Shown in pieces: positions 11,775 to 27,986 of a stretch of DNA of 64,000 bases. A program made the position numbers and the translations under genes. The stretch covers positions 468,730-532,729 of IMG/VR virus record IMGVR_UViG_3300049215_000771. One strand, written 5' to 3'. The notes below the pieces were generated by a model that saw only the letters and a list, made by a program, of their open reading frames with translations, did not search any database and was not told the DNA's origin. The number at the start of each line of letters is the position of its first letter. The stretch's first letter is position 1.

Positions 11775-11971
11775 CTACGGCGTGTCTTCCTTTTTTTCTC
11801 GTTCCTTCTGGATCGACTCCATAATGGAGTTGGTGAAAGCATACCCGCATCTGGTACATTTCCACATGCGCTCGCTTTCTGGAGCCTTGTACGGATCGGC
11901 GTACCGATCTTCCATGTATTCCAGGTCCAGTTCACAATCACCGCCGCAGATGCAACAAGTCGTGTCATGTA
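11775..11971 (-). CDS. Zn-ribbon protein
   Basis: CCICGG...CTRCG; start approximate. Confidence 0.5.
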
Positions 11972-12213
11972 GCATCGTCGATGCTCCTGTGTTTCTTGTT
12001 GACCACCACTTCGATGGGATCAACACAAACAACACTCCCATCTGCCAGTTCCACAATTATACAAAGACCGTGGGAGTCGTGGTACTCTCGAACGTACCCG
12101 ACTCCCTCCACCGGCTCTCCGTGATGTTCTGTGTCGTATTCGTTGCCGTTGGTGCCTCGGAAGTATACCGTTTTACCAACGGCATCACGACACTTCTCCC
12201 ACAAATTTCTCAT
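11965..12213 (-). CDS. Small protein with C-terminal HRSIDD
   Basis: KKHRSIDDAT*. Confidence 0.65.
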   Translation of the reverse strand: MRNLWEKCRDAVGKTVYFRGTNGNEYDTEHHGEPVEGVGYVREYHDSHGLCIIVELADGSVVCVDPIEVVVNKKHRSIDDAT

Positions 12214-13412
12214 TTCTTCAACACCACCGAAGAACCATCGCTCCGATCCCGAATCTCACAACCCAGGTCGATGATCCTTCTTTTCAGGGCATCGGCCCCA
12301 GCCCAATTTCGCTGCCGCCTGCATTCCTCTCGGAGTTTGGCAAGCTGGATGGCGTCGTCGGGAGCATCCTCATCCGAGAACATCTGGAAACCGAGTAATT
12401 CGGCTTGCTCCAGGCTGGGATTCACGAAAGTCGCTGCGATGGCTTCCGAAGTATTCAGGTTGGCGTCCATCGCCTTGGCGAAATCTTCCGAAACTCCATG
12501 TTCTGGTGCCGACTTCAGCCGATTCCTCAAAGCCTTCCACTGTTGCGCCGAAGTCCCATCCAACAACCCTTCAACGGATAAAGGTTTGGCATAACTGGCC
12601 GAGAGAATCCAGAAGCGAATCACGTTGGGGTCCGTGCCATTCGCCCGATAGTCCCGGATGTTGACGGCGTTCCCCTCGGATTTTCCCATCCTCCTGTCGC
12701 CGATCTGAACCATCCCATTGTGGAGCCAGATGTCCGCCAAGGGCGATCCGGCATGAAGGCATTCGGACTGAGCGATCTCATTCTCGTGATGCGGAAACTT
12801 CAAATCGTCGCCGCCCACATGAATATCCACCGTGAACCCAATGGTCCTTTCAATCATGATGGAGCATTCAAGATGCCAACCAGGTCGCCCCTTGGGGAAT
12901 TCAGACTCATTGGCCTTCGGCCCCTTCCACAAAACGAAATCTTCCGCCGTTTTCCGACGTGAAAGTTTCCCATATCCAGGGAACGTCTTCGTTTTGAAGC
13001 GAATGTCGCCATCTTTGTGGTAAGCATGGCCACTTTCGACAAGCGCCGTAGCTGCAACCTTCATCGGGATCATGTAGTCCGTCACACGGGGGTACAAGTC
13101 CGCCTTCTGGACGTTCAGCCAGCCCATGTCATTGAAATAGTCGTCGATGAAGCGGTCAGCCAGTTCTTTGCTGGTCACGCCCTCCTTTGCCGCCCGATCC
13201 ACGATTTTGTCGTCCACGTCCGTAAAATTCTGAACGTGGTAGACCTTCTGCCGGCGTTTGAGCCAGCGTTTCAGCACGTCCCACACAACATAGCTCCTGG
13301 CGTGTCCCAGGTGGCAGTAGTCGTAGACCGTTACACCACAAGCGTACATAGTGATCGGGCGGTCACTAGGGACTTCTTTTTCACGCCGGGTTAGGGAGTC
13401 GTGCAGTTTCAT
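12210..13412 (-). CDS. cysS: Cysteine--tRNA ligase (compact)
   Basis: MYACGVTVYDYCHLGHAR, NFTDVDDKI, GRPGWHLECS, FPHHENEIAQ, RMGKS. Confidence 0.96.
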   Translation of the reverse strand: MKLHDSLTRREKEVPSDRPITMYACGVTVYDYCHLGHARSYVVWDVLKRWLKRRQKVYHVQNFTDVDDKIVDRAAKEGVTSKELADRFIDDYFNDMGWLNVQKADLYPRVTDYMIPMKVAATALVESGHAYHKDGDIRFKTKTFPGYGKLSRRKTAEDFVLWKGPKANESEFPKGRPGWHLECSIMIERTIGFTVDIHVGGDDLKFPHHENEIAQSECLHAGSPLADIWLHNGMVQIGDRRMGKSEGNAVNIRDYRANGTDPNVIRFWILSASYAKPLSVEGLLDGTSAQQWKALRNRLKSAPEHGVSEDFAKAMDANLNTSEAIAATFVNPSLEQAELLGFQMFSDEDAPDDAIQLAKLREECRRQRNWAGADALKRRIIDLGCEIRDRSDGSSVVLKK

Positions 13413-13448
13413 GCGCCCATAGTACCCCGATTTAGAAGAAGTGTAAAG

Positions 13449-13527
13449 TAGCCTCGGTGGGAGTCGAACCCACATCCTTTCGGCACCGGGTTTAAGCCGG
13501 CTGCGTATACCGTTCCGCCACGAGGCC
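13449..13527 (-). tRNA. tRNA-Leu(UAA)
   Basis: GCCGG-CTTAAAC-CCGGT. Confidence 0.93.
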
Positions 13528-13531
13528 ATTC

Positions 13532-13573
13532 AACCAAATCGGTTGAAAGTTGGTGTTTTCAACCGATTTGGTT
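13532..13573. repeat. Perfect inverted repeat between PheRS and tRNA
   Basis: AACCAAATCGGTTGAAA...TTTCAACCGATTTGGTT. Confidence 0.8.
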
Positions 13574-14640
13574 TATCTAATCTCGACCTTCAATTCCTTC
13601 ATCCGGTCACGAAGCTGTTGCTGACGGGCGTTGATTTCCTCGTTCGTCAGCACCCGATCCATCGACCTGTAGGTGATGCGGTAGCAATGAGATTCCCGCT
13701 CACCTTTTTTGAAAGAATCCAGCAGCTTGACACTTTCAACCAGATCGCCGTGTAGATCACGAACAATCTGGTAGAAATCGTTCTCGCTGTAGCCAGCCGG
13801 AATCCAGAACGCCATGTCTTTGACACACGGCGGCTGGACCGAGAATGGCTTGAATTTAGAGTCCAGGTCTTTGAACTGGTTGAGGAAGCGTTCGTCCTCA
13901 CTCCAGAACAATCGGATGTCCGGGATGTCGAAAACAAGCATTGCCAGCCGCTCCAGGCCAACACCGAACGCCCAGCCCTGGGTGTAGTCACTGTAGTTGT
14001 CACCAAGAGGCCCAAGGGCTTCACAGCGCTTGATAACATCGGGATGGACGATGCCACAACCCGCTACTTCCAGCCACTCGCCATTCCATTCGATCTCCAA
14101 CTCCCAAGAAGGGTTCGTGAACGGGAAGTAGGAGTCCACGAATCTGTAGTTCAACTGCCGGTTATGTGGGCTGTACGGGATGTTGAGAACTCGTTCTATC
14201 ATGTCGAACATATGTTCCTTCAACATCCTCTCAAGGTCCAATGTCTGATATTTCGCCTTGTGAAAAAGGCCCACGCCTTCAACCTGGTGGAACACCGGGT
14301 AATGCGTGCGATCAATGGTGTCTCGCCGGTACACGTCGCCACAGACCAGGAACTTCATGTGTCCCTTGTTGATGAGCATGTGCTGATGGGCGCTGGTATG
14401 CGTCCTCAGAACGTGCTTCTCGTCAACGTAGTAGGTGTCAGAAGGCCGGCGAGAGGGATGGTCGGGTGGAATCAGCAGATGGTCGAAGTTATCTTCCACT
14501 GTCACCACCGGCCCGAACGTCTCGTAGATTTCGTGGCCGGGGAAGGCCATATAGATAGCCTTCTTGACAATTTCGAGCGGGTGTCGTTCCTTCAGATGGA
14601 GGTTACGCCCCATTTTTTCTTTGATGCTCGGCGGGATCAT
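13573..14640 (-). CDS. Monomeric (mitochondrial-type) phenylalanine--tRNA ligase
   Basis: LRTHTSAHQ, YRRDTIDRTHYPVFHQ, YFPFTNPS, GWAFGVGLERLAM, C-terminal FDX-ACB domain (YRSMDRVLTNEEIN). Confidence 0.95.
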   Translation of the reverse strand: MIPPSIKEKMGRNLHLKERHPLEIVKKAIYMAFPGHEIYETFGPVVTVEDNFDHLLIPPDHPSRRPSDTYYVDEKHVLRTHTSAHQHMLINKGHMKFLVCGDVYRRDTIDRTHYPVFHQVEGVGLFHKAKYQTLDLERMLKEHMFDMIERVLNIPYSPHNRQLNYRFVDSYFPFTNPSWELEIEWNGEWLEVAGCGIVHPDVIKRCEALGPLGDNYSDYTQGWAFGVGLERLAMLVFDIPDIRLFWSEDERFLNQFKDLDSKFKPFSVQPPCVKDMAFWIPAGYSENDFYQIVRDLHGDLVESVKLLDSFKKGERESHCYRITYRSMDRVLTNEEINARQQQLRDRMKELKVEIR

Positions 14641-14807
14641 GGCTTACCGTCCTGATCGACCCAAATCATGCGGAAGTTTTTGCCGCTCCACTCCATGTGG
14701 TAGCCTTGGCTTTTCATGTAGGCGTAGTGCATGGCGGCAATGCCAAAAACCACGGCGAACAACAAAACATACCAACGAATTTCTTTCCACATATTTCACC
14801 CTTTCAG

Positions 14808-14898
14808 CGGAAGAGAAGGGAATTGAACCCTTGCCGGACAATTAAGCCGGGCCAGTTTTCGAGACTGGTGCAGCAATCACAACATCTGCCTCTCTTCC
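14808..14898 (-). tRNA. tRNA-Ser(CGA)
   Basis: CCAGT-CTCGAAA-ACTGG, G73. Confidence 0.92.
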
Positions 14899-15479
14899 TT
14901 GGAGCCGCACTACGACCATCGTGGCCCCCACGCCTATCGTAGTTTTCGCAACCGGGCCTGAGAACGGCTTTTGACGGCCAACACAGGACTTAACTGGTGC
15001 TGGATGCGGCATAAATAGGGACCGTGCTGCGACCATCATAGTCCTCGACGAATGTATCGCAACTTTTCCAGCCGGACTTACCGAACGTGTTTTCGTTCTT
15101 GCCCCCGGCGCTCCAGGCGAAGGTCTTTTTCAACCATAGGAGTCGGTAAGGCAGCTTGAACTATTCACTCGGATACTGTTTGGATACGGCCCTCGTCGAA
15201 CAGTCCTCCCAGGCTTGTAGGATTTCTCGTTCGGGCAAGGTTGTGCGCACAACCTTGTCGGGTCCAAAGCGACTCAGCCAGTGTGCTATTACGCCAAAAG
15301 GATTGCACACCAGGTAGCCTAACCTGGGTGCGTTTACTCCCACTCTTTGAATGGTGGCTGCCTCTAAGCCAACATCCTGGCTATCTCCGTTTAGCTTTGG
15401 CGGCGAGTTTATACAGCCCGCCGTGATATATCCCGATTCCTTCATCCTGGTGGATGCCCAACCATTTCGATGAAGGAAG
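14899..15479 (-). ncRNA. Large ncRNA candidate containing a 23S rRNA GTPase-centre (H42-H44) like domain
   Basis: No credible ORF between two tRNAs; 15386-15270 reads AGATAGCCAGGATGTTGGCTTAGAGGCAGCCACCATTCAAAGAGTG-(insert)-GCGTAATAGCACACTGGCTGAGTCG. Confidence 0.8.
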
Positions 15480-15562
15480 TGTCCAAGGTGGGAGTCGAAC
15501 CCACAAGTCCTTGCGGACGCCAGCCCCTCAAGCTGGTGCGTTTACCGTTTCGCCACTTGGAC
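15480..15562 (-). tRNA. tRNA-Leu(GAG), long arm
   Basis: CCAGC-TTGAGGG-GCTGG. Confidence 0.95.
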
Positions 15563-15761
15563 AAAAATCGTCGTCTATGCTTCTCCAATCTTTCGGTTTT
15601 GCTGGTGGAAGTTTGCGAGCAAACCTCCCGTAATGCCTTTCGTCTACCACAAGACCGCCCCAGCCTTTACCAAACCATCGCTTCCCGGTCCATTCTTTGT
15701 CTTCCGGTCGGACGGTTTCACCAACTTCAAGAAACCGATACCCTGGAGGCGGTTTTCTCAT
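15528..15761 (-). CDS. Small protein with WRSIDD motif
   Basis: PPPGYRFLEVGE...KDWRSIDDD; runs into the tRNA. Confidence 0.55.
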   Translation of the reverse strand: MRKPPPGYRFLEVGETVRPEDKEWTGKRWFGKGWGGLVVDERHYGRFARKLPPAKPKDWRSIDDDFCPSGETVNAPA

Positions 15762-16014
15762 CTTGCACCTGAACAAAACACGTCCCTGGAGGCAAGTAGA
15801 AACTTTTCACCCTCCATGTCATTTCCGGCAGGACGTATTCGATCTCAATGATCCTACCTTCTTTCACCAACTCATCCAGTAAGTCGGGCACGTCGATGTC
15901 GTTCATCGACAGCTTCGTGACCACTTCCTCGTCCGCAGCAAGCTGCGTTGCTTTGCACCCCTGAAGGGAGATGATCTTGTCCACAAGAAACTGCTTGGCC
16001 TCGTCCCTATTCAT
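15727..16014 (-). CDS. Winged-helix-like hypothetical protein
   Basis: LLDELVKEGRI. Confidence 0.55.
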   Translation of the reverse strand: MNRDEAKQFLVDKIISLQGCKATQLAADEEVVTKLSMNDIDVPDLLDELVKEGRIIEIEYVLPEMTWRVKSFYLPPGTCFVQVQDEKTASRVSVS

Positions 16015-16360
16015 CGTCGATACTCCGGTACTTGCGTTGCTTTGGTGTTGGTTCGGGCTTCTTCCGAATCAATTCTATATCAACTTCCCAACAAGTACCA
16101 GGACTACCATCACGAATTGACTTGACGTTATATGCCGCCATCGGCTCCCCGCCACGACCATCCAGACCGCATCCATATCCATTGCACGGAACATACCTGT
16201 CCGTGATCTCACATTCGCTGTAGTCACGGCCCGACGCCAGTTCGGGACTGGCCCATTTTCCTGATGATGGCAAAATCCGAATGATGTCGCCTACCTCGAA
16301 CTTGTAGAGGTAAAACGGCGGGTTATTGTGCGGGGGATACGGGTTGGGTGGCACTGGCAT
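16007..16360 (-). CDS. SH3-like protein with C-terminal YRSIDD
   Basis: KFEVGDIIRI...RKYRSIDDE*. Confidence 0.65.
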   Translation of the reverse strand: MPVPPNPYPPHNNPPFYLYKFEVGDIIRILPSSGKWASPELASGRDYSECEITDRYVPCNGYGCGLDGRGGEPMAAYNVKSIRDGSPGTCWEVDIELIRKKPEPTPKQRKYRSIDDE

Positions 16361-16515
16361 TGTCTTGTCTCCTTGCACAGACAGGACAAAGCATAACATA
16401 ATGCTTGGACTTTGGCAACCTCACCATTTTCCAGCCATCTTTTTCGCCCCAACCGCCACTTTTCTTACTGCCCCCAAGCGGTTGCTTCCGTGTGCAGGTG
16501 TGACACTTGAGCGTG

Positions 16516-16752
16516 CTATGTTTCTTGAAGCCCATCTAACCACTCCCTGAACGAGAGTTTCTGAAACGTGTTGATCGGGCGGCTGGGGTCTTGAAGTAAC
16601 TTCTGAACCTCACGCTGCCCCGTGCTGCCCGTCAAATCCTTCCAGGCTTTCTCCCTGGTTTGTCGGGCGTATTTCTTGAAGACACCAGACAGGCTCGACG
16701 CCATGTCCACGATAGCCTTCTTGATATTTGTGTCAGGCGTTTTCTTCGTCAT
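16516..16752 (-). CDS. Hypothetical protein
   Basis: C-terminal LSFREWL. Confidence 0.55.
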   Translation of the reverse strand: MTKKTPDTNIKKAIVDMASSLSGVFKKYARQTREKAWKDLTGSTGQREVQKLLQDPSRPINTFQKLSFREWLDGLQET

Positions 16753-17240
16753 CCTACCCCCGTTGGCGGATTGACCGGGGGCTTAACTTTCTTCGGCTTC
16801 GGCAAGCTGGGAGCGTCAGGTTTGTCCTGCCCACTACCACGAGCCTTTGTCTGGACGTAAAACACGAAAGAAGTTTTGTTCTCGAATGCCTGGGACGGCG
16901 AGTCGGTTTCCCGGTAAACCAGTTGTAGTTTTGTCTGAGGCGTCTCAAAATTGAGAAATTCCTTCAGACGAGCGAGTACCGAGCCAATGAACTCAGGTGA
17001 GCCGGTGATCCGAACGCCGTCCTGGGCATACGTCGTACCTTGGTGATCGTACCGAATCGGCGACATCTGGATCGGCGTATCTGGCCGAAGATTTCGCCAA
17101 TACTGTACAATCTGGTCCTTAGTCGCCTTCCATTTCTTCTGGACAGGCTTCTTCGAGGGCGTTCCCTGGACCGGCTGTGCTGTCGGTTTTGGTTGTGCCT
17201 CCCCAGGTTGTTCGTTCATCCACTCGCTGAAACTCTTCAT
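16749..17240 (-). CDS. Putative virion-internal protein
   Basis: N-terminal MKSFSEWMNE, preceded by CTACATAC. Confidence 0.6.
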   Translation of the reverse strand: MKSFSEWMNEQPGEAQPKPTAQPVQGTPSKKPVQKKWKATKDQIVQYWRNLRPDTPIQMSPIRYDHQGTTYAQDGVRITGSPEFIGSVLARLKEFLNFETPQTKLQLVYRETDSPSQAFENKTSFVFYVQTKARGSGQDKPDAPSLPKPKKVKPPVNPPTGVG

Positions 17241-17500
17241 ACCAAGTATGTAGAGCGTGCGAGTTGTTTTCACGGCGGATTCGGCGGCTCATGCACTTCT
17301 TGACGTAATGCCAACGACCGGCATTTTTCGCCATGCAATCCCGCCAACGATGCGGAGGCGAACCAACACAGTCATGTTCGTCGCCATTCCGGGCCTTGTA
17401 GCGATGTCCCATCATGTAAGACTCCTTGGTTAGAGACTTACATTGGACACCTTGCCTTTCCTCTCATGGGTTCCTCCCGCACACTGACTGTGCGTATTTG

Positions 17501-17749
17501 TCACAAGTCTTCGAGCATCGGGATGGGTGGGCCGAGAAACTTCAGCGGCATCCTCTCACCCTTCATCTCAAATTCGCACGGATCGTTGTAGTGTTTTCGC
17601 CTCTCATCAAGGCATTTTCCGTCTTTATACCATTGGCAGCCAGGGCAGGCAGCGAAAATTTGCCAGTCGGTTGCAATGATGGGCAGCTTCTTCAGTTGTT
17701 TGCAGTACATATAGCACCTTCTTTCAGGAAGGTATACTGCAAATAACAC
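17501..17749 (-). CDS. Cys-rich hypothetical protein
   Basis: ORF; start uncertain. Confidence 0.4.
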   Translation of the reverse strand: MLFAVYLPERRCYMYCKQLKKLPIIATDWQIFAACPGCQWYKDGKCLDERRKHYNDPCEFEMKGERMPLKFLGPPIPMLEDL

Positions 17750-17764
17750 GCCAAAGGACTGTAG

Positions 17765-18355
17765 TTAGTGGCTTACCTCCGACTTGTTCTTGGCATCTCG
17801 CTCGGCCTGGACCTTGGCAAAATCCCATTCGGCATCCATCAGGTCTTCGACCAGGCGCTCCGTTCCGGCCAGCATATCATCGCCTCGCTCCAGCAATTCC
17901 CACCACTTGGGAACCTTCTTCAGCTTCTTGTCGAACTCCTGGGCCAGCCAATGAGAGTTTGCTTCCTCGCCAGGCGGGTTGAAACCCATCAATTCGACGC
18001 CATGAATCGTCCAAAGTGTCACGACCCGACCGGGAACCGGCCCACGTTCATATTCGTCCTGATGCGGCGGATCGTAGGGTTCCTTCTTCGTGAGCCAGTT
18101 TATGTACTCAGCGGTGTTATGCCTGTCGTCGGCGAAATCGCCACGGTTCTTGACTTCGCCGGTCGGATAGCCGTCGTGGTCGATGCCATAGAACTCGACG
18201 AGGAACCACCGCTTGTCATCTCGATACTTCGCCGGTTGACGATGCTCCCAATAACAGATAACCCCATAGGGTCGCTCATGTTTGGCTGGTTCTGCTTGGG
18301 CTTGAACCTCAGTCTGAGGCTCACCCTGATAGTGATGTTTCTCTCGCTTCGGCAT
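17765..18355 (-). CDS. Hypothetical protein
   Basis: 196-aa ORF with GAGG SD. Confidence 0.7.
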   Translation of the reverse strand: MPKREKHHYQGEPQTEVQAQAEPAKHERPYGVICYWEHRQPAKYRDDKRWFLVEFYGIDHDGYPTGEVKNRGDFADDRHNTAEYINWLTKKEPYDPPHQDEYERGPVPGRVVTLWTIHGVELMGFNPPGEEANSHWLAQEFDKKLKKVPKWWELLERGDDMLAGTERLVEDLMDAEWDFAKVQAERDAKNKSEVSH

Positions 18356-18369
18356 GACAACCTCTCAAG

Positions 18370-18455
18370 TGGGCACTGAGGGAGTTGAACCCCTCGACGA
18401 CCGCCTGGATGTTTAACGTCACGAGTTTTACAGACTCGCACCAGGAACAGCGCCC
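18370..18455 (-). tRNA. Atypical tRNA-Tyr(GUA)-like RNA lacking a normal D-arm
   Basis: Acceptor stem, CGAGT-CTGTAAA-ACTCG and T-arm present; D region only ~9 nt. Confidence 0.7.
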
Positions 18456-18512
18456 AAATCATACCCCAATTTTAGGGCATTGTAAACCAGGTCTTGCTAA
18501 CTACAATTCACC

Positions 18513-18944
18513 ATGCACAAAAACTCCAAGAAACAAGGTGATGCCTGCCTCGGTGGTGCAATCGCTTATTTCACTCACAAGGGCTACGGCGTATCAATAC
18601 CATTAACCGACAGTCAGGATTATGACCTGATCGTAGACATTGACGACACGCTCAATCGTGTGCAAGTCAAAACTACTTATTTCGCTCGCCCAAACAGCAA
18701 GGGACAATTGGAATACTACGTTTCTCTTTCTACCAAGGGCGGCAACAAATCACGCCAAACCATCAAATACTTCGATCCGAACCGTGTCGAAATACTGTAC
18801 ATCGTCACGCACGGCGGGGATCACTACTGTATCCCGATGAAGGATGGTTTCAGCGCCAAAAGCACACTTAGGTTGTCCTCCAAATACGACCGTTACAAAG
18901 TGCATCCGGCAGGAATCGAACCTGCAAGTCCCGAAGGAAGCTGA
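18513..18944 (+). CDS. PD-(D/E)XK endonuclease (homing type)
   Basis: KQGD...VSIPLTDSQDYDLIVD...RVQVKT. Confidence 0.85.
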   Translation: MHKNSKKQGDACLGGAIAYFTHKGYGVSIPLTDSQDYDLIVDIDDTLNRVQVKTTYFARPNSKGQLEYYVSLSTKGGNKSRQTIKYFDPNRVEILYIVTHGGDHYCIPMKDGFSAKSTLRLSSKYDRYKVHPAGIEPASPEGS

Positions 18945-18984
18945 TTTACAGTCAGCTAGGCCCACCACACTGCCCAACGGATGC
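18901..18984 (-). tRNA. tRNA-Tyr(GUA)
   Basis: GCTGA-CTGTAAA-TCAGC. Confidence 0.92.
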
Positions 18985-18999
18985 GTTCGTAGCCAACAC

Positions 19000-19464
19000 T
19001 CATTTACACGGTTCAACGACGACGGCGACATGCGCCGGCGTTTCCATCGGCCTCCAGTTCATGGCCTTGTAGTCGAAAAACATATCGACAAAACCCAGGA
19101 CCAGTTCCTTCTCCAACGGCAGTTTGTAATTGTCCACGATGGTCAACTGCCCTACCCGCCCCATCTGCGGAACGTCCATCTCATAATAGCACAACTGGAG
19201 AGCGTGCAGTCCGAGACGGATGTACTTGTTGTACTCCTTGCAAGCCGAAGTAGCGTCCGGCCCATGAATCCTCAACATCGGGCCGACCATTTCTTTGTCC
19301 ACTGTCTCGTCTGCCTGAGCAGTTTTGCACGCCTTCAGGAAGTCGAATGGCGGATCAGCCTTCGCCTTTGCCTTCATCTGTTCGACCAGCGACTCCAATT
19401 CCTCCCAAGAAACTTCCTTGTAAAACAAGTCGCCGTTTTCGTCTTTCAGGTTGAAACCAAACAT
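19000..19464 (-). CDS. Hypothetical protein
   Basis: 154-aa ORF between tRNAs. Confidence 0.65.
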   Translation of the reverse strand: MFGFNLKDENGDLFYKEVSWEELESLVEQMKAKAKADPPFDFLKACKTAQADETVDKEMVGPMLRIHGPDATSACKEYNKYIRLGLHALQLCYYEMDVPQMGRVGQLTIVDNYKLPLEKELVLGFVDMFFDYKAMNWRPMETPAHVAVVVEPCK

Positions 19465-19484
19465 TTCAGGTTCTCCAAGGCGAG

Positions 19485-19560
19485 TAGCCGGGAGGGGACT
19501 CGAACCCCTAAGACTCTAGGTTTGAGCTAGAGATGTCTGCCAAGATTGCATCACCCGGCC
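19485..19560 (-). tRNA. tRNA-Leu(CAA), short variable loop
   Basis: TCTAG-CTCAAAC-CTAGA, 5-nt variable loop. Confidence 0.88.
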
Positions 19561-19937
19561 AAATCTTCCAACAACTGATCCACACAACTTTCCAGGTCCA
19601 CCAGCGATTCACCCTCGAAAGTGAATTCCAACAAATGTTCCGCTTCAACATCCCTCATCTCAGGCATGAATGGATACGCCTTCAAGAAGGCTCTCGTCTT
19701 GTCGGGATATTCCTCGTCCCAAAACAAGTGCAAGTTCGTCTTGCCGAAGCGACCAACATGGGTCACACACTGACACTTCTTCTGGCAGAACTCCTTGATC
19801 TCCTTCAGAATCTCGAAACTGAGCAGCTTGAACTGGAACGTCACAGCCCTGGTCTGGACCTGAACCTCCAGGTCGTCACCCAGCATTACATCCCAATTGT
19901 CAGTATGGGCCACCGCCGCCACGCCAGACTCAGCCAT
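19551..19937 (-). CDS. Hypothetical protein
   Basis: ORF ends inside the tRNA 5' end. Confidence 0.55.
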   Translation of the reverse strand: MAESGVAAVAHTDNWDVMLGDDLEVQVQTRAVTFQFKLLSFEILKEIKEFCQKKCQCVTHVGRFGKTNLHLFWDEEYPDKTRAFLKAYPFMPEMRDVEAEHLLEFTFEGESLVDLESCVDQLLEDLAG

Positions 19938-20175
19938 CTTTCGTTACCACCGTTCCTTCTGGAATCTCAACATCTTGAATGTTGCGAAACATCAAGGCCA
20001 CTCCCTCGCCGGCCTTGGCGGACTCCCTCAAGCGAGCGTAGTTTTCGATGGCGGACAGGACGGCGGTGTGCGAGCCGATGGTCAGTTTCTCACCAACCCG
20101 CACATCGCATTCCAGTCTGCCAACAAGCTGTGTGCCCTTGACTCGGTACACACGCTCAACGGTCATCACCTTCAT
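19930..20175 (-). CDS. Stand-alone EF-Tu domain II-like protein
   Basis: Aligns by eye to domain II of the tuf gene in this window (AKAGEGVALMFR vs [12 protein letters not shown]). Confidence 0.75.
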   Translation of the reverse strand: MKVMTVERVYRVKGTQLVGRLECDVRVGEKLTIGSHTAVLSAIENYARLRESAKAGEGVALMFRNIQDVEIPEGTVVTKDG

Positions 20176-20458
20176 TGAATTCCTTCAACTGTTCCTTGAA
20201 GGACAATTCCGACAAGATTTCGTGTTCGTGTTTGCTCCGCTTGGGAAACTTGTCACTGTGGCAGACTCCACACTGAGTATTGCCGCAGTCCCAGGCGTCC
20301 TTCTTGCGGAACCGACCGATCTGTTCGTCGCATTCACAATCAACGACGTAGGGATCAGCGCCGATCTTGCCTCGGTCCTTGTTGCTCTCGACGTGCATAC
20401 GCCGATGTTTCTTCCACTCACGACGAGCAATCCGCTCATCTTCGTGCCATCGTTTCAT
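20156..20458 (-). CDS. Hypothetical Cys-containing protein
   Basis: DCG..CGVCH. Confidence 0.6.
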   Translation of the reverse strand: MKRWHEDERIARREWKKHRRMHVESNKDRGKIGADPYVVDCECDEQIGRFRKKDAWDCGNTQCGVCHSDKFPKRSKHEHEILSELSFKEQLKEFNEGDDR

Positions 20459-20517
20459 CAGTACCTCCGTAATGGGAATAGAAGTTAGGCTTCTGTTCCC
20501 CGGAGATACGAACGAAA

Positions 20518-20763
20518 TTACACATGGCTACTCCTGCATGTAGGGCAAAGAACTGTCCAATCTTCCCAGGAATGGCCCCCTTCAGTCCTGGTGATGTCTT
20601 CAACCAGCCACCCCGCATCTTTGGCTACTTGTGCCATACTTGCCCAGGTAGCTCCCGGCTCGTGCTGTTTGCCGTCCTCGTAGGTGTTGCATTTCTCGCA
20701 AATGAACCCGGCATAAACCAGCGCCACAAGTTCATATGGGTCGTCAGCATTAGTCGCTTCCAT
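20518..20763 (-). CDS. Zn-binding hypothetical protein
   Basis: CEKC...AGW...LCPTC. Confidence 0.55.
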   Translation of the reverse strand: MEATNADDPYELVALVYAGFICEKCNTYEDGKQHEPGATWASMAQVAKDAGWLVEDITRTEGGHSWEDWTVLCPTCRSSHV

Positions 20764-20949
20764 CGCCCTCGCTCTCCTTAACATGCTTGTCGAATTCTTC
20801 CATCAACATCTCGGTCTGAGCGACCAATTCCGGTGATGGCTCCGTTGTCCAGGGGATAGAAGGAACCTTCATTCGCCACTTGCGACAAGTACACCAGTGA
20901 GTTTCCGTTTTACGGGTGAACTTCATTTCGTGTCTGATCTTACCCATAG

Positions 20950-21026
20950 TGCCCAGGGTGGGACTCGAACCCACAAGACCCTCGTTCTGAGCGAGAGATG
21001 TCTGCCTATTTTTGCATCACCTGGGC
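20950..21026 (-). tRNA. tRNA-Leu(CAG), short variable loop
   Basis: TCTCG-CTCAGAA-CGAGG, 5-nt variable loop. Confidence 0.88.
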
Positions 21027-21030
21027 ATAT

Positions 21031-21105
21031 TGTAGGGACGTATTCGATGACCTTTGCTCCCCGTAGTTGAGAACAGCTTTCGCTTGGGGTCATCTAGCCC
21101 CTACA
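21031..21105 (-). ncRNA. Small structured RNA candidate
   Basis: TGTAGGGGC/GTCCCTACA, GATGACC/GGTCATC, AGC-GAAA-GCT. Confidence 0.5.
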
Positions 21106-21141
21106 GTATTTAGACGCACCTGCGTCCAAGAGGTTCGCAAT

Positions 21142-22323
<1,182 letters not shown>

Positions 22324-22444
22324 TTCAAACTCCTAGTTGGTTCCAACGAGGAACCGTTCAGGGCCATTAGTCCCGCCAACCCAACCCTTTCGAGTCTTTT
22401 CACCACAACGAGTGAATGCCAGAGTTGTCAAAGAACCGATGCAG

Positions 22445-22527
22445 TGCGGCGGGTGGGAGTCGAACCCACAAGGGCTTTCGCCCGCAGCGTTCTGAGCGCT
22501 GTGCGTTTACCGTTTCGCCACCGCCGC
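22445..22527 (-). tRNA. tRNA-Leu(CAG), long arm
   Basis: CAGCG-CTCAGAA-CGCTG. Confidence 0.95.
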
Positions 22528-22530
22528 AAC

Positions 22531-22761
22531 TTACTTCTTCATTTCGTCGTACACTTGCAAGGCAAAATCAACCCACTTCGCCTTGACATCAGGAGGCATC
22601 CCCTTCTCGTCGGCCTTCGCCTCGCAGAGATGTTGATACGCCTCACGGGAGTCAGCTTGTTGGTAAAAAGCCAACAGCGTGTTCTGCATGTCGTTGAGAA
22701 CTTCGTCTTCGCTGGGAACCGCATTCCAGGCCATTATTCTCTCCTTATCCACACGCTCCAT
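22531..22761 (-). CDS. Hypothetical protein
   Basis: Small ORF. Confidence 0.5.
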   Translation of the reverse strand: MERVDKERIMAWNAVPSEDEVLNDMQNTLLAFYQQADSREAYQHLCEAKADEKGMPPDVKAKWVDFALQVYDEMKK

Positions 22762-22990
22762 CTTCGATCTTGACGATCACCTTGTCAGTTTTCACCGCAT
22801 AGGTCAGCATCGTCCAGTCGGCGTCCTTTTCCTTCACCTTCGCCGCTTGCAAGGCCACCTTCTTAAACCTCTCCACGACGGCGAGGGCAGCCCGCAACTC
22901 GTCAGTTTCCTGCTTCGTTGCCGAGATCACCACCGAGCGTTCGCCACGCACGGCCCCGTCGTAACCCTTGATGACTTCTTCAGCTTTCAT
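22745..22990 (-). CDS. Hypothetical protein
   Basis: Start MKAEE after the tRNA-like RNA. Confidence 0.55.
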   Translation of the reverse strand: MKAEEVIKGYDGAVRGERSVVISATKQETDELRAALAVVERFKKVALQAAKVKEKDADWTMLTYAVKTDKVIVKIEDGACG

Positions 22991-23006
22991 AGTTGCCTCG
23001 CAGAAA

Positions 23007-23097
23007 TTGGCAAGGTGGGATTCGATACCCACACGGTAGATTCGTCAACCTACCAACCCCCTCTAGCGGGGGCTGCGTCTTCTTCCGCCACTTGCCA
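23007..23097 (-). tRNA. Leu-like tRNA with 8-nt anticodon loop and 8-nt T loop
   Basis: GCCCC-CGCTAGAG-GGGGT; T loop TATCGAAT. Confidence 0.7.
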
Positions 23098-23098
23098 G

Positions 23099-23174
23099 TG
23101 TCCAAGGTGGGACTCGAACCCACAAAATCACCAGATTCTCAACCTGGCGGCTTTGCCAATTTGCCTACCTGGAC
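23099..23174 (-). tRNA. tRNA-Leu(GAG), short variable loop
   Basis: CCAGG-TTGAGAA-TCTGG. Confidence 0.88.
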
Positions 23175-23618
23175 AATTCTCTGGCTATGACAATTAGGAC
23201 ATAGAAACTGCAAGTTTTCTTTCCTGTTGTCGAGCCAGTTATCGTTCTTGTGGTCAACTTCCAACACCAACGGTTTGCCGTTCCATACATCCGTTTGACC
23301 ACAACACGCACATTTATACTCAACTCCCGATTCGATCAATGCCCGCCGCAGCATATACCCGTGAGTTCTGCGGTCGCCCTCGGACAACACCAGTATTTCA
23401 GACCAGTGCTTCTTCAGTCCGTTCGTCAATCCCTTCCGTGACGCTTGCCCCAAAAAATGAGTCGTATCAATCTCGTATCTTTTGAGAAGAGCCTTAATAT
23501 GCGATTGACTCCCCCCGGTCAGCTTGAGGCCCAACATTCGCAAAACATCACGAATGCAAATGGACTCCTTGGCAATTTCCCCAAGCAACTCTTTGGTGTA
23601 TTTCGTCTTGTTTCCCAT
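23139..23618 (-). CDS. HNH endonuclease (paralogue of 11298-11744)
   Basis: LEVDHKNDNWLDNRKENLQFLCPNCHSQ; stop lies in the tRNA anticodon loop. Confidence 0.9.
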   Translation of the reverse strand: MGNKTKYTKELLGEIAKESICIRDVLRMLGLKLTGGSQSHIKALLKRYEIDTTHFLGQASRKGLTNGLKKHWSEILVLSEGDRRTHGYMLRRALIESGVEYKCACCGQTDVWNGKPLVLEVDHKNDNWLDNRKENLQFLCPNCHSQRIVQVGKLAKPPG

Positions 23619-23643
23619 GAAGACATTATAGCAAACATATCTG

Positions 23644-23883
23644 TCATTTGCAAGTAATGTCTTCCAGTCTCGTGTACTGCCAGAAGTAAATGCTACCCTT
23701 GTCGCTGTTCAACTTGTTCAGCCGCTTCACTTCCGCTTCTGCCCGTTCCGGCGTCGGAACTACCTTCTTCACCGTGAGTCGCATCTTCAACTCGTCCGGC
23801 GTCAGTTTCACCGCTCCCGACGCTATCTCGGTTGGTTCTAAGTCCAGCCTCAGTACGGCGTAAGCAGGGGCTAGGGGAATCAT
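23644..23883 (-). CDS. Hypothetical protein
   Basis: Small ORF. Confidence 0.55.
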   Translation of the reverse strand: MIPLAPAYAVLRLDLEPTEIASGAVKLTPDELKMRLTVKKVVPTPERAEAEVKRLNKLNSDKGSIYFWQYTRLEDITCK

Positions 23884-23978
23884 CGAACAACAACCTCATG
23901 TAATTGTCCACTGTTCTCGTCTGAATCTGACCGCCTCTCTCGAAGCGGTCCCACTGTTTTTCAGAGATACCAGTAAAC

Positions 23979-24266
23979 TCATCGCTCGTCATCGCCGACT
24001 TCCCGGAGGGTGCGGTCGGCTTTTTCGATCTTGTCGAAGTCTTCGTTGTAGAGGGCGAACCGGATTTCTTGCGTTTCGTCATTGGAAAGTACCGCCCGGA
24101 TTGGGAAGTCAACCACAATGGTCGTCGGTTCCTCCAGTTCCACGCTGGCCTCGTCGCCTTCTTCCTCCGCAGGCATGTCGATCCGCATGAACTGAGAAAG
24201 ATTGATGGTATAATCCAACAAGTGCGGCTCGGCTTCCGCCATCTCAACCAAATCACGCAGTTTCAT
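23979..24266 (-). CDS. Acidic hypothetical protein
   Basis: Start MKLRDL. Confidence 0.55.
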   Translation of the reverse strand: MKLRDLVEMAEAEPHLLDYTINLSQFMRIDMPAEEEGDEASVELEEPTTIVVDFPIRAVLSNDETQEIRFALYNEDFDKIEKADRTLREVGDDER

Positions 24267-24468
24267 GTTTTTCCTTATCGTGGATGCGCCACCCAGGACG
24301 TTCCTTGTAGAGAATGTCGTTGATGGCATCGCCGTAAACAAACCCCGCCTTCGCCTCGGTCGTCATCAGGCTGTGGGAAAGTTCTTCCAACTCGCTCACC
24401 ATCTCCTGATAGTCCTGAACGACTGCGATCAGTTCTTCCTTGGTCAGTTCGTGCAGTTGTCGTTGCAT
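24253..24468 (-). CDS. Hypothetical protein
   Basis: Small ORF. Confidence 0.5.
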   Translation of the reverse strand: MQRQLHELTKEELIAVVQDYQEMVSELEELSHSLMTTEAKAGFVYGDAINDILYKERPGWRIHDKEKHETA

Positions 24469-24469
24469 G

Positions 24470-24811
24470 TTAGTTCGCCGGCTCGATCTCACACTTCATG
24501 CTCCCCTTGCAGCGTGCCACACGCTTGTCAGGGCCGAAGCTGTGAACTTGTTCTTGTTTCAGTTCCGCCAGTTCCTTGCTGCAAGTCTTCAAAATGGCCC
24601 GGCCTTTGTGATGGACCGTTTCGGCAACCTTCTTCCCGTGCTGTACCGAGTGTCCAAACACCTTCTGGCACAACTCGATAACATAGTCAACCGTGTGATC
24701 GTCGTCATTGACCAAGATCACATTGTACGGAGGAAGAATCTTGTTCTTCGTCTCGTTGTCGGTTTGATCTTCCACGTCGATGCCCAAGTCGGGCAGAGTC
24801 GTTGTACTCAT
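24470..24811 (-). CDS. clpS: Clp protease adaptor ClpS
   Basis: PPYNVILVNDDDHTVDYVI...VHHKGRA...ELAELK. Confidence 0.92.
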   Translation of the reverse strand: MSTTTLPDLGIDVEDQTDNETKNKILPPYNVILVNDDDHTVDYVIELCQKVFGHSVQHGKKVAETVHHKGRAILKTCSKELAELKQEQVHSFGPDKRVARCKGSMKCEIEPAN

Positions 24812-25632
24812 TCGTCTGTTTCTTCCTTTCAAGAACTTCTTCAAAGTGAGCGATGACCTTGGCTCCACGCACCGGGCAGAAGCGGCCCTCGTTCACTTCT
24901 CTACGGTAGTAAGCGATCCAACCTTCCAGTTCTTTGACACTCCCCTGCTTCCGCAGGTTCATGTGCCCGCCGTAGATTCCCCGTCGCTGGGCGAGTTGTT
25001 GTCCCGCCCGATGTCGGGACTGCATTTCCCCTCGGATGATTCCGATTCTTGTTGATTCTGACATCGGTACTTTCCTGGTAATGGCCCTATCCAACCCTTT
25101 GGCAAACCATCGCCAACCGGAATATACCATCCGGTCGCCGTTTCGGGATGCCCTGTCTGTTGAAGAATCCCGATCAGTTCGCCGTTGAACTCACAGCCTT
25201 CGGGATAATCATCCGTACTGTATTTCGCCAGTACACCCTGAATGGCCTCGTTCAGTTCCTTCTTGATTTTCTCGATCACACTCATTTCTGCGCCCCACGC
25301 CTTATGCCCGCCAACTTCTTGCAAGATCGGCTCGTAGTATTTCCAGGCCGTAGCGTAAGGAATGTTGGTGTCACACCCTTCACAATCTTCTTCCAGCAAA
25401 TGATGCCCAACACCTTCTTCAGCACAAGCCGGGTCCGGGCAATGCCTCATTGGAGCATGACAGTTCGGACAAACGTAGTAAAACTTCCTGCCACTGGCGT
25501 CGGTACTCCATTCAATCGACCGGGCCTGAAACTCCCTCCAAGTGATCGCCCCATCTTCGTACAACTTGCGAAGTCGGCGGGGGTCCATCTTCTTGTATGG
25601 TCCAGCCGGGCCGTTGATGGTTATGAGCCGTC

Positions 25633-25974
25633 TCAGGTATCTTTGAGCGCCTTCATCACGGCGTTGAACGCTGCTGTCGCCCGTTCCTTGTCCCCGATCT
25701 TGTTGACCGCCCATAACATCAACCTCAAGTCGTTCGCTTGAGCCTCCAGCGCCGTTTGCGGGATTGGGAAAGCATCTCCATTGCGGTCATGCTTGCCGTA
25801 CCTGTCGATTTTTCGAGCCTCGGCGATGGCTTCTTCGTCGCCTTCGAGGATGCGTTGCACCAGACCACGTTCGTTGAGAGCCGCCAGGAAATTGAAAACT
25901 TCACCTTTGCTGATGGTCAACTTCTCGGCCAGCATTTCACACAGCTTCCAGCGATCCTTCATCGACATCGCCAT
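25633..25974 (-). CDS. Hypothetical protein
   Basis: ORF with GGAG SD. Confidence 0.6.
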   Translation of the reverse strand: MAMSMKDRWKLCEMLAEKLTISKGEVFNFLAALNERGLVQRILEGDEEAIAEARKIDRYGKHDRNGDAFPIPQTALEAQANDLRLMLWAVNKIGDKERATAAFNAVMKALKDT

Positions 25975-25988
25975 AACTGTTCTCCAAG

Positions 25989-26070
25989 TGCCTCCCCAGG
26001 GGATTGAACCCTAACCTTCTGCTTTTCAGGCAGATGTGCAGACCAAATGGAACCACTACACCAGAGAGGC
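25989..26070 (-). tRNA. tRNA-Phe(GAA), enlarged D loop
   Basis: TCTGC-CTGAAAA-GCAGA. Confidence 0.85.
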
Positions 26071-26277
26071 AATCATTCATCCCACAACTGATACCGCCAA
26101 TGCTTTGGGATAGAAGCAAGGGGGATTTTCGTCGGTTTGTCACACGCCGCACACACGCAATAGGCTCCCACTTCCATCGCATCCTTGATGTCTTCTACCG
26201 TCACCGCCAGAACCGACTTGCAGTGTTCGCATACCACCCGAATGGTGTTGTTATTTTCAACAATTCTCATGGAAGCC

Positions 26278-26541
26278 TCAATCTTCCGGTCGTCCCCACC
26301 GATGATGGTCGTGATCGTCCCTGGCGTAATCATCCGGGTTGAAGTATTGCAAGTTGCCGGACCAGTGATCGACTTGCTCCACGAATGCCCGCAGGCTGTT
26401 ATAAACTTCCAATATCCCGGCTTTCTGCATCTTATTGTAGTTCCGAGACTCGCCCTTGGTTGCCGTGGTTTCCTCGATGAACTTCACTAACGTCCGTGCT
26501 TCGTCCACAGTAAGCACTGACCACTGAAAAGGCAATAGCAT
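26278..26541 (-). CDS. Hypothetical protein
   Basis: Small ORF. Confidence 0.45.
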   Translation of the reverse strand: MLLPFQWSVLTVDEARTLVKFIEETTATKGESRNYNKMQKAGILEVYNSLRAFVEQVDHWSGNLQYFNPDDYARDDHDHHRWGRPED

Positions 26542-26801
26542 TACAACTCCAAACCACCGTTGACCAGAATTTCTCGAACCTCAGCAGAACTACCGATGGG
26601 TTCCAGGGCGGCATACAACTGCTCGGCGACATAAACCTCGCTTGCGCCCTCATGGTTGACCACCCGAACCTGAGTCGGGTCCGCCTCAACCGGAAACGCC
26701 TCGTACTCACCTGTGACGAAAACCAGGAAGCAGTGATTGATCTGCTTGATCCTTTCTTCGTCATCGAGAGCAGGCGGAAGAAACTCGTTCCAATAACCCA
26801 T
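26541..26801 (-). CDS. Hypothetical protein
   Basis: Start MGYWNEF with AGGAG SD. Confidence 0.55.
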   Translation of the reverse strand: MGYWNEFLPPALDDEERIKQINHCFLVFVTGEYEAFPVEADPTQVRVVNHEGASEVYVAEQLYAALEPIGSSAEVREILVNGGLEL

Positions 26802-26813
26802 GTTTTTTTCTCC

Positions 26814-26903
26814 TGGCGGTAACGAAGGGAATTGAACCCATAAGGCGGTTTCCCGCTCGGCGGCTCTTGTGCCGTTGCCTTCTCCACTTAGGCTTGCGCT
26901 ACC
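26814..26903 (-). tRNA. Ser-like tRNA with 6-nt anticodon loop and encoded CCA
   Basis: GGTAGCG/CGTTACC-G-CCA; CGGC-ACAAGA-GCCG; long arm. Confidence 0.65.
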
Positions 26904-26969
26904 AGATTTCGCCATTTGCTCCGCTGTTGATGGCATTGATCGACTCATCATCCATCCTTGCTCTACCAG

Positions 26970-27043
26970 TGCCCAGGGTCGGACTTGAACCGACGACCTT
27001 CTGCTCTTCAGGCAGACGCTACTACCAACTGAGCTACCTGGGC
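26970..27043 (-). tRNA. tRNA-Phe(GAA)
   Basis: TCTGC-CTGAAGA-GCAGA. Confidence 0.95.
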
Positions 27044-27060
27044 CAAACCATTCAGTAAAA

Positions 27061-27172
27061 AAGGGCGTGCAGGATGATGGGACTCGAACCCACCTGTACC
27101 TACCTTGCACGGCTTGCGCCGCTTGGGGACTCGCTGCCAACTGCTCATTACGGTCACACCCTGCACGCCCTT
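27061..27172 (-). ncRNA. tRNA-like RNA with 16-bp terminal stem
   Basis: AAGGGCGTGCAGGGTG/CATCCTGCACGCCCTT plus T-arm GTGGG-TTCGAGT-CCCAT; no canonical anticodon arm. Confidence 0.65.
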
Positions 27173-27520
27173 GGTCCTTAGCCCCTCACTCGCCCGTGAA
27201 CCGTTCGCTTCCTGCGACGGTTGAACCGGAAGTTATTCCAGTAGGCTTTTCGCCTCCAGACGCCTTGGGACTTTTTCTTCTTCCTTTGTTTCAACTTTGC
27301 CTCCGCAGTTGAGGAATTGGTAGTTTCCAACGCCGTTGCAGAGGACGCAGATGACCATTTTATTTACTCCCAGGTTGCGGCCTTTTCTTCAACCAAGGCG
27401 TATGCCGCTTCGCCTGACACTCGGCTGTGCAGAAATGCAGCAGCCGCCTTTTGCCACGAACCGTGTGATATGGGCCTTCAATCACTGTGCGGCAACCGTC
27501 GCACACAACTCCACCCATTT

Positions 27521-27766
27521 TTAACACGACTCGTCTCCCGAACGCTCGAAAAGTGAACCCTTCACTTCATGTCCGATGCCGACACACTTGACGCCAGCCT
27601 GGACAACGTGACTTCCCAGCCGCCCCTTGTGGACCTTCACGACCTTGCTACACCAGGGACATTTGACTTCCTTCAGCTTCGACAAATCTTTCTTCTCATA
27701 GCCCCTGTGAACCTTCTTTCGTTCAAGGTGCTTGCCGGTATTTGTCGGAATGTTCTTGTTTGCCAT
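27521..27766 (-). CDS. Basic Zn-finger-like protein
   Basis: CPWC...H...C. Confidence 0.5.
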   Translation of the reverse strand: MANKNIPTNTGKHLERKKVHRGYEKKDLSKLKEVKCPWCSKVVKVHKGRLGSHVVQAGVKCVGIGHEVKGSLFERSGDESC

Positions 27767-27776
27767 GTTACACCAG

Positions 27777-27894
27777 CGGATCAGAACGGGACTCGAACCC
27801 GCAACATGAATTTGGGTAGCGATTTTGCTACAAGACCCCCATGTACCTTACCTTTTTAGGGCTTAGTGCTTCTGCCGTTTCTGCCACCTGATCC
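27777..27894 (-). ncRNA. 118-nt expanded tRNA-like RNA
   Basis: GGATCAG/CTGATCC-G, D- and T-arms, loop CTAAAAA, ~45-nt variable region. Confidence 0.65.
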
Positions 27895-27896
27895 AG

Positions 27897-27984
27897 CGGA
27901 AGGTGCGGGAGTCGAACTCGCAACACCCCTTTCAGGGTGTGTCCCGTTTCGAGCGGGGTGGGCCTGCCAATGCCCAAACCTTCC
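27897..27984 (-). tRNA. tRNA-Ser(CGA), second copy
   Basis: CCCG-CTCGAAA-CGGG, long arm, G73. Confidence 0.88.
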
Positions 27985-27986
27985 AG

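Follow-up and report, generated by a model that had tools for sequence, protein, structure and literature searches.

Why would a phage that encodes a complete elongation factor Tu (EF-Tu) also carry, a kilobase away, a single domain of this factor as a gene of its own? The question is raised by a stretch of 64,000 nucleotides, positions 468,730 to 532,729 of IMG/VR virus record IMGVR_UViG_3300049215_000771, the whole of which we call the window. It holds an 81-amino-acid (aa) open reading frame (ORF) that resembles domain II of EF-Tu, the beta-barrel that contacts the aminoacyl end of tRNA. We find that this ORF is a real gene, that its product shares fold and ancestry with EF-Tu domain II and that it is not a leftover of tuf; of this we are nearly certain. 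The function of the free barrel is a matter of graded likelihood. The best explanation as a whole, a domain II homologue that binds the acceptor end of tRNA, receives from us a probability of roughly 40%.

An earlier note on this DNA had placed the ORF at 19930..20175 and had aligned it by eye across domain II. The ORF, which starts with ATG and is on the minus strand, is indeed among the listed ORFs of the window, and sequence and structure comparisons agree that it spans domain II from end to end. In a phmmer search of PDB sequences, residues 5-81 align to residues 213-296 of E. coli EF-Tu (E 2.2e-4), and all matches (59/59) are domain II of EF-Tu or EF-1alpha. The NCBIfam EF-Tu models match residues 3-81 at positions 214-299 of 396 (E 1.5e-6), and a profile made from 20 members of the family described below detects solved EF-Tu chains at E 1.2e-14, SelB and aEF-1alpha following at 1e-9 to 1e-10. 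The structure prediction that the note had proposed as a check decisively found the fold. With four sequences AlphaFold2 reached a predicted local distance difference test (pLDDT) score of 57, and that model was not used; with an alignment of 61 sequences the score was 96.9. Foldseek superposes the latter model on EF-Tu domain II over the full length with a template modelling (TM) score of 0.89-0.90 and a root-mean-square deviation of 1.7-1.8 A (E 2.6e-6), and VIA-align places 81/81 residues with a Z score of 13.7. Thus the six-stranded beta-barrel that defines the EF-Tu domain 2 superfamily is present over the whole domain. As read from these alignments, the protein is cut exactly at the borders of domain II, with neither G domain nor domain III.

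Another check proposed in the note, a hidden Markov model search with GTP_EFTU_D2 (PF03144, gathering score 30.3 bits), went the opposite way and left the 81-aa protein unmatched even at E ≤ 1. Among the 20 family members PF03144 matches five (best E 5e-10), and PF14578 likewise matches 5/20. Identity to bacterial EF-Tu domain II is about 29%; aligned by MAFFT with the EF-Tu of the window, the ORF falls on domain II at about 30% identity, and BLASTP between these two proteins gives nothing significant. A PHROGs search with the ORF returned noise only, and PADLOC reported nothing for the ORF or its neighbours.

Domain II is the module with which translational GTPases in general contact the 30S subunit, and in EF-Tu the hairpin 219-226 faces the 30S shoulder. 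An all-against-all structural search gives the model Z scores of 12-14 for domain II of eRF3, EF-Tu, SelB and aEF-1alpha, so that its nearest folds all come from ribosome-binding GTPases, and the barrel could conceivably occupy the shoulder site as a competitor and modulate host translation. We regard this as very improbable, given that the equivalent of hairpin 219-226 is two residues shorter and re-patterned, and that a lone small domain is unlikely to have a useful affinity for the site. The loop corresponding to EF-Tu 243-250 is shortened as well, by about four residues.

A full tuf close by and a protein that no Pfam model matches are also what one would see if the ORF had arisen by chance or were a functionless relic of a tuf duplication. 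The distance of about 1 kb given in the note is correct, since 967 bp separate the tuf stop from the start of the small ORF. Several lines of evidence bring this explanation close to refutation. The ORF ends exactly at domain borders, is confidently modelled and has its own start codon, preceded by a Shine-Dalgarno-like GAAGGA; the same arrangement of GAAGGA and ATG is present in the closest relative for which DNA is available (L001). Between the window and L001 the ratio of nonsynonymous to synonymous substitutions (dN/dS) is about 0.19 at a dS of about 1.6. Pairs farther apart show saturated dS, but their ORFs are without exception unbroken and equal in size, some 25 homologues in all, which argues for a maintained protein-coding gene. 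The note had implied the nearby tuf as the source of the small gene, and here the phylogeny speaks against it. A maximum-likelihood tree was built quickly from 120 domain II segments; it has 99 columns only, leaves most forks unresolved and is used solely to argue against a recent copying of the neighbouring tuf as the origin of the small gene. In this tree 20 family members and two longer proteins group together with a Shimodaira-Hasegawa-like approximate likelihood-ratio (SH-aLRT) support of 94. Canonical EF-Tu domains II form a separate clade (97), which holds both the EF-Tu of the window and that of a related phage. From tree separation, dN/dS and intact ORFs we reject an origin by recent tuf duplication or as a pseudogene. 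We also considered a frameshift fusion of the two overlapping genes, the barrel lying in the +1 frame relative to the gene upstream, and rejected it: the overlap has no evident slippery motif, and the barrel gene has its own Shine-Dalgarno-like site and ATG.

How widespread is this gene? A word-indexed search of 5.8 billion clusters returned three relatives only (60-68% identity). An exhaustive HMMER profile search of 1.84 billion representatives yielded 108 proteins at E ≤ 1e-3, which fall into three groups. The first, the present family, comprises about 20-25 proteins of 80-93 aa with the N-terminus MKVMTVE.V.R.KGT..G.LECDV, to which a further profile search added a few. Its members are 30-65% identical in pairs and were seen only on huge-phage contigs (530-670 kb) or phage-like fragments. 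The second group, of 85-150 aa, is much nearer to canonical EF-Tu domain II and often has a zinc-ribbon or a hydrophobic leader; some of its proteins consist of two or three barrels in tandem. The remainder are fragments of ordinary EF-Tu. To judge from these sequences, the family of stand-alone domain II proteins to which the ORF belongs is distinct, old and fast-evolving. A tblastn search of 50,697 GenBank phage records gave zero matches, pattern scans of metagenome contigs of the Joint Genome Institute (JGI) and of GTDB species genomes, which detect close kin only, found no close relative, and literature searches for phage proteins that consist of EF-Tu domain II alone brought up nothing relevant. 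Some members bear the automatic JGI name 'translation elongation factor EF-Tu-like GTPase', which is misleading, because they have no GTPase domain. As a separate observation, proteins with tandem EF-Tu domains II and without a GTPase domain occur in metagenomes (P0015, P0019, P0023, P0027, P0060, P0108); loci L017-L033 belong to this observation on tandem-barrel and bacterial stand-alone domain II proteins.

What does a barrel without its GTPase bind? We mapped the tRNA-contacting residues of EF-Tu onto the ORF through the phmmer alignment, using the contacts known from established ternary-complex structures, in which E259 stacks on A76 and R288 touches the tRNA 5' end. Equivalents of E215 (E7), F218 (Y10), I220 (V12), V226 (L17), E259 (E44), F261 (Y46) and L277 (M62) are kept, and those of D216 (R8), T228 (V18), R262 (A47), N273 (G58) and R288 (E73) are not. 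Across the family the E259 position is acidic in 15/20 and the F261 position aromatic in 15/20, and the hydrophobic residues of the pocket are retained. Two basic residues that are conserved and specific to the family, R11 (Arg in 17/20) and K13 (Lys in 14/20), stand in the shortened hairpin beside the pocket. This pattern fits a putative pocket for A76 and the aminoacyl group that has been kept while the contact to the 5' end has been lost. Because the A76-stacking Glu and the pocket hydrophobics are mostly kept and two basic residues line the hairpin, we favour, tentatively and with more doubt than confidence, a small protein that would serve the tRNA and EF-Tu system of the phage itself by binding tRNAs at their 3' acceptor end, at A76 and the aminoacyl group. 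Residue retention, together with the family's place in the tRNA arrays of huge phages, leans toward such a tRNA-end binder.

There are precedents for a barrel of this kind acting on its own. The isolated C2 domain of initiation factor IF2 binds the fMet-ACCA end. The archaeal protein Pbp11, for which E259 and R288 are the two residues stressed, binds tRNA in gel shifts and requires a flexible basic N-terminal tail to do so (PMC9540759). Given these two cases, a lone barrel of this fold can bind an acceptor end.

Several points weigh against acceptor-end binding by the phage protein. In EF-Tu, domain I completes the aminoacyl pocket and domains I and III hold the acceptor stem, and all of these are absent here. 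The R288 position is Glu in the ORF and is not basic across the family, and residues vary at the N273 position. With the barrel beginning at residue 2-4, there is no counterpart of the basic N-terminal tail on which tRNA binding by Pbp11 depends. At a net charge of +1 the protein is near neutral, and isoelectric points in the family are mostly 5-7. Conservation falls in many places on glycines and core hydrophobics, which would be retained in any barrel of this type. The direct neighbours of the gene vary by lineage (a Cys-rich protein, an ART-PolyVal protein, a methylase-like protein, or tRNAs alone), and a place in tRNA islands may be due to synteny that was inherited, or to co-expression, and not to function.

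Should the barrel nonetheless bind tRNA ends, the CCA end would enter on its pocket side, in the manner of EF-Tu, IF2-C2 and Pbp11, and the barrel would in this way assist or shield the phage's own tRNA pool during the takeover of translation. Since the protein is near neutral, it probably needs help to bind tRNA with useful affinity, and an obvious candidate is the Cys/His-rich protein of the overlapping upstream gene, together with which the barrel is probably made in this lineage. That protein may supply the extra RNA or protein contacts that the near-neutral barrel lacks.

The upstream gene encodes a protein of 100 aa with the motif GRFRKKDAxDCGxxxCxxCHxDKxPKR, whose GRFRK..DA.DCG part is invariant, as are C41, C58, C63 and C66; C43 and H67 are nearly so. 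This composition suggests that the protein is probably zinc-binding. Its family counts at least 202 clusters (60-75% identity) on contigs of up to 596 kb and has no relative in Pfam, among PDB sequences (profile search) or in PADLOC. The gene lies within about 0.5-2.5 kb of tuf in the window, on the P0114 contig, in L010/L011 and in L007 but not in L009, hence in four contexts out of five, and its product is possibly a factor associated with phage EF-Tu. Directly downstream of it, with a constant overlap of 20 nt, the barrel gene is present in the window, in L001, where the gene caller had missed it, and in L007/L008, and is absent from L009-L011, which carry the Cys/His-rich gene; hence the barrel is an accessory gene, joined in one sub-lineage to a conserved tuf-linked core gene. 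A resemblance of the Cys/His-rich gene to the TriTu immunity protein (PF24689) was dismissed as noise (14.4 bits, E 0.035, against a cut-off of 27 bits; 3/52 members, best E 0.0026). A complex prediction for the Cys/His-rich protein and the barrel scored 0.00; run without controls, it counts neither way.

Most relatives of the barrel gene sit on short contigs of small, tightly packed, co-directional ORFs without annotation. Where the flanking sequence suffices, tRNA, aminoacyl-tRNA synthetase or tuf genes surround it. In L013/L014 it lies directly between tRNA-Phe and tRNA-Leu, with 13 tRNAs in 6 kb, and tRNAs are its only direct neighbours in L013. L015, a 614-kb contig, has 16 tRNAs in 20 kb, two aminoacyl-tRNA synthetase genes and a GatB/YqeY-like gene around it; L007 has two tRNA-Leu genes nearby and a tuf that starts 2.2 kb downstream, and L012 an ArgRS-like gene 5 kb away. 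A LAGLIDADG gene is also seen near the barrel gene in L012. In L015 and L016 an ART-PolyVal ADP-ribosyltransferase gene (PF18760, E 2e-13) begins 4 nt downstream of the barrel homologue, and in L015 the four-gene block that holds both sits between tRNA-Glu and tRNA-Ile. In L006 the barrel gene overlaps the gene of a 466-aa methylase-like protein.

Another conceivable role is that of a protein-protein adaptor or regulatory subunit, in which the barrel would dock or target a variable neighbouring enzyme or factor, and might steer it to EF-Tu partners, the ribosome or tRNA, or restrain it. The 20-nt overlap with the Cys-rich gene in three lineages, the 4-nt distance to the ART-PolyVal gene in L015/L016 and the overlap with the methylase-like gene in L006 speak for an adaptor, as do barrels fused to N-terminal Cys-rich or zinc-ribbon segments, one within the family (P0018) and five in the bacterial group (P0066, P0071, P0072, P0081, P0105). 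On the other hand, the partners differ among lineages, the L013/L014 gene has two tRNAs and no protein gene beside it, the Cys-rich family is by far the larger one and in most cases comes without a barrel gene, and hhalign finds no relation between the Cys-rich N-terminus of P0018 and the family of the upstream gene. We think an adaptor role unlikely.

The note had offered, beside a cap protecting aminoacyl-tRNA, a decoy for defences that target EF-Tu. Here the free domain II would titrate host toxins or defence effectors for whose action docking on this domain of EF-Tu is required, for example BECR-type tRNases such as CdiA-CT NC101, or other toxins that depend on EF-Tu or modify it. CdiA-CT NC101 binds exclusively to EF-Tu domain 2 (PMC5737660), and PDB entry 5i4q is among the matches of the ORF. 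EF-Tu-dependent ribotoxins are widespread in conflict loci (bioRxiv 10.64898/2026.09.18.752725), the phage's own diverged EF-Tu fits a pressure on host EF-Tu, and one relative of the barrel gene adjoins an ADP-ribosyltransferase gene. A mimic of a very conserved host surface should, however, stay near that surface, and the family diverges fast (30-65% identity), is about 29% identical to bacterial EF-Tu domain II and has shortened the loops at 219-226 and 243-250. Moreover, EF-Tu is among the most abundant proteins of the cell, and a decoy would be in competition with it; PADLOC gave no match, nor was there one to a known anti-defence protein. This poor conservation of the surface makes a decoy rather improbable. 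A broader proposal combines both ideas of the note: huge phages would use a free EF-Tu domain II barrel as a counter-defence device, aided in this lineage by a conserved, zinc-binding partner that tracks tuf, and the barrel would either cap the CCA or aminoacyl ends of the phage's tRNAs against host toxins that cleave or modify these ends, or act as a sink for toxins to which domain II of EF-Tu is a docking platform. To our mind this is a long shot.

The one domain with which EF-Tu grips the aminoacyl end of tRNA, encoded on its own, offers a compact and readily testable handle on how huge phages use translation genes, and the Cys/His-rich partner that follows tuf across these genomes offers a like one. 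Binding or shielding of tRNA ends, or neutralisation of EF-Tu-dependent toxins, would make the barrel a new accessory translation or anti-defence factor and would suggest a role for the stand-alone domain II proteins of mycobacteria and other bacteria. If the counter-defence proposal is true, a core translation factor would have given rise to a new class of anti-defence protein. If neither function holds, what stands is a well-defined orphan family with a confident predicted structure. The features of the locus are collected in Table 1.

Table 1. Features of the barrel locus, of its surroundings in the window and of related loci; positions are those of the window unless a locus is named
Feature	Position	Strand	Remarks
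Stand-alone domain II gene (P0001)	19930..20175	-	ATG start, 81 aa; EF-Tu domain II match by sequence and fold
Shine-Dalgarno-like GAAGGA	20181..20186	-	5 nt 5' of the ATG of the domain II gene, within the end of the upstream gene; read from sequence
Cys/His-rich 100-aa gene, probably zinc-binding	20156..20458	-	upstream; shares its last 20 nt with the 5' end of the domain II gene
128-aa ORF	19551..19937	-	downstream; begins before the domain II gene has ended (8-nt overlap of ATG and stop)
tRNA-Leu(CAA)	19484..19560	-	next tRNA downstream of the three-gene block; ARAGORN and Rfam
tRNA between tuf and the gene pair	20950..21026	-	Rfam RF00005, 40.7 bits, gathering score 29; missed by ARAGORN; stretch conserved in L007
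Complete phage tuf (EF-Tu)	21142..22323	-	393 aa, GTG start; Pfam GTP_EFTU, D2 and D3 and NCBIfam EF-Tu models
tRNA-Leu(CAG)	22444..22527	-	just upstream of tuf; ARAGORN and Rfam
tRNA array	4153-28351	-	
Glutathionylspermidine synthase gene	1226-2371	-	
CysRS gene	12210-13529	-	
Single-chain PheRS-like gene	13573-14640	-	
tRNA-Sec-like match	18370-18456	-	Rfam, below threshold
Homing-type endonuclease gene	18513-18944	+	
'Pyl' tRNA call	23007-23097	-	ARAGORN
Homing-type endonuclease gene	23139-23618	-	
Homing-type endonuclease gene	36424-37683	-	
Cys/His-rich homologue, L001	379-693		
Cys/His-rich homologue, L007	91-432		
Cys/His-rich homologue, L009	6001-6291		
Cys/His-rich homologue, L010	6001-6300		
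ART-PolyVal gene, L015	10268-10849	+	downstream of barrel homologue
ART-PolyVal gene, L016	1064-1645	+	downstream of barrel homologue

Through their overlaps the upstream, small and downstream ORFs form a tightly coupled block. The downstream 128-aa ORF has no match in Pfam, PHROG or PADLOC and no homologue in L001 or L007, and is not conserved beside the relatives; small neighbouring ORFs at 15.7-25.7 kb have no Pfam match. All genes and tRNAs in the ORF's half of the window lie on the minus strand, one homing-type endonuclease gene described below apart.

A protein identical to the barrel sits on a 673-kb contig, and the same DNA is found in IMG/VR as a 533-kb viral genome; an IMG/VR search returned only the window's own genome (L002), identical to window positions 11933-28175. 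tRNAs, aminoacyl-tRNA synthetases and elongation factors are known in huge phages (PMC7162821). With a CysRS, a PheRS-like protein that has a class II core and an FDX-ACB anticodon-binding domain in a mitochondrial-type layout, an EF-Tu, and also a DNA polymerase A and a DnaB-like helicase, the window, by its predicted gene content, is that of a huge phage with a translation island, of the profile described there. The barrel gene lies in the middle of the 24-kb tRNA array, beside tuf. ARAGORN finds 14 tRNAs, and Rfam one more, between 4 and 28 kb, nearly all of them for Leu, Ser, Tyr and Phe. Almost all have long variable arms (7 Leu, 4 Ser, 1 Tyr), and Phe is represented as well. The bias to Leu, Ser, Tyr and Phe is common to the window, L009, L010 and L013, and L015 holds tRNAs for other amino acids, and on this ground the tRNAs seem to be sorted by class into separate islands.

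The phage tuf product scores 590-615 bits with the NCBIfam EF-Tu models (615 bits against a model cut-off of 479) and is about 57-62% identical to the bacterial EF-Tu sequences in the phage-record collection. Where E. coli EF-Tu has IEDVF (residues 214-218, in the pocket for the aminoacyl side chain) it reads IEGVH, a change behind which altered handling of aminoacyl-tRNA might lie. One ARAGORN call within the tRNA array, labelled 'Pyl' and 91 nt long, has the anticodon CUA, which reads amber. This tRNA abuts tRNA-Leu(GAG), and Rfam is silent on it at E ≤ 0.01; it could be a suppressor tRNA, hinting at stop-codon recoding, or a false call. The tRNA-Sec-like match of Rfam reaches 32.6 bits against a gathering score of 47. 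The island also contains homing-type endonuclease genes (PD-(D/E)XK_5 and HNH), the first of which is on the opposite strand and runs into tRNA-Tyr.

How does the barrel compare with known systems? With EF-Tu domain II (PF03144; E. coli residues about 205-296) it shares whole-length homology, the six-stranded barrel, the equivalents of E215, E259 and F261 and the hydrophobics of the A76 pocket; it differs by two shortened loops, by the loss of D216, T228, R262, N273 and R288, by the missing Pfam match and by its separate clade. It is not an EF-Tu, because G domain and domain III are lacking: against the models of EF-Tu proper (TIGR00485 and NF009372), whose cut-offs are 449-522 bits, the 81-aa protein scores 26-27 bits, at positions 214-299 of 396 only. 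The C2 domain of IF2 (PDB 1D1N, whose title names an fMet-tRNA binding domain) has the same barrel fold (Z 8.3), but it is part of a large GTPase instead of a separate gene, and no sequence relation to it was detected here.

Nearer in architecture is Pbp11 (PF0907) of the Thermococcales (PDB 7ANU, 4PGO and 1XE1; NF041207), a stand-alone protein of about 90-100 aa with the domain II fold, with which the model aligns over 79 residues (Z 11.7-12.3). The E259 equivalent (E44) is kept in the phage protein, whereas that of R288 is E73 and is not conserved. With 17.7 bits (E 0.0026) against a cut-off of 100 bits for the Pbp11 model NF041207, and without the tail, the 81-aa protein is not a member of Pbp11. 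Pbp11 is, moreover, archaeal and linked to the proteasome (PAN), whereas the phage protein comes from the tRNA island of a huge phage, with no archaeal proteasome in its context.

Bacteria, finally, have stand-alone GTP_EFTU_D2 proteins of about 85-150 aa that consist of domain II only, some with a zinc-ribbon or membrane leader, as in Mycobacterium gordonae, M. szulgai and M. gastri and in metagenome-assembled genomes of Actinomycetota, Saccharibacteria and Oscillospiraceae; in cultured Mycobacterium species the protein has about 85-112 aa. Unlike the phage family, these proteins pass the Pfam cut-off (48.9 bits), keep EDVF..GRGTV and AGDNVG and are nearer to canonical EF-Tu; they are chromosomal, lie outside tRNA islands and fall outside the phage family's group in the tree. 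Given that this bacterial group is chromosomal and passes the Pfam cut-off, stand-alone domain II proteins as such are not new, and since archaeal Pbp11 and the mycobacterial proteins already exist, the family described here is best seen as the phage-borne version of stand-alone domain II barrels.

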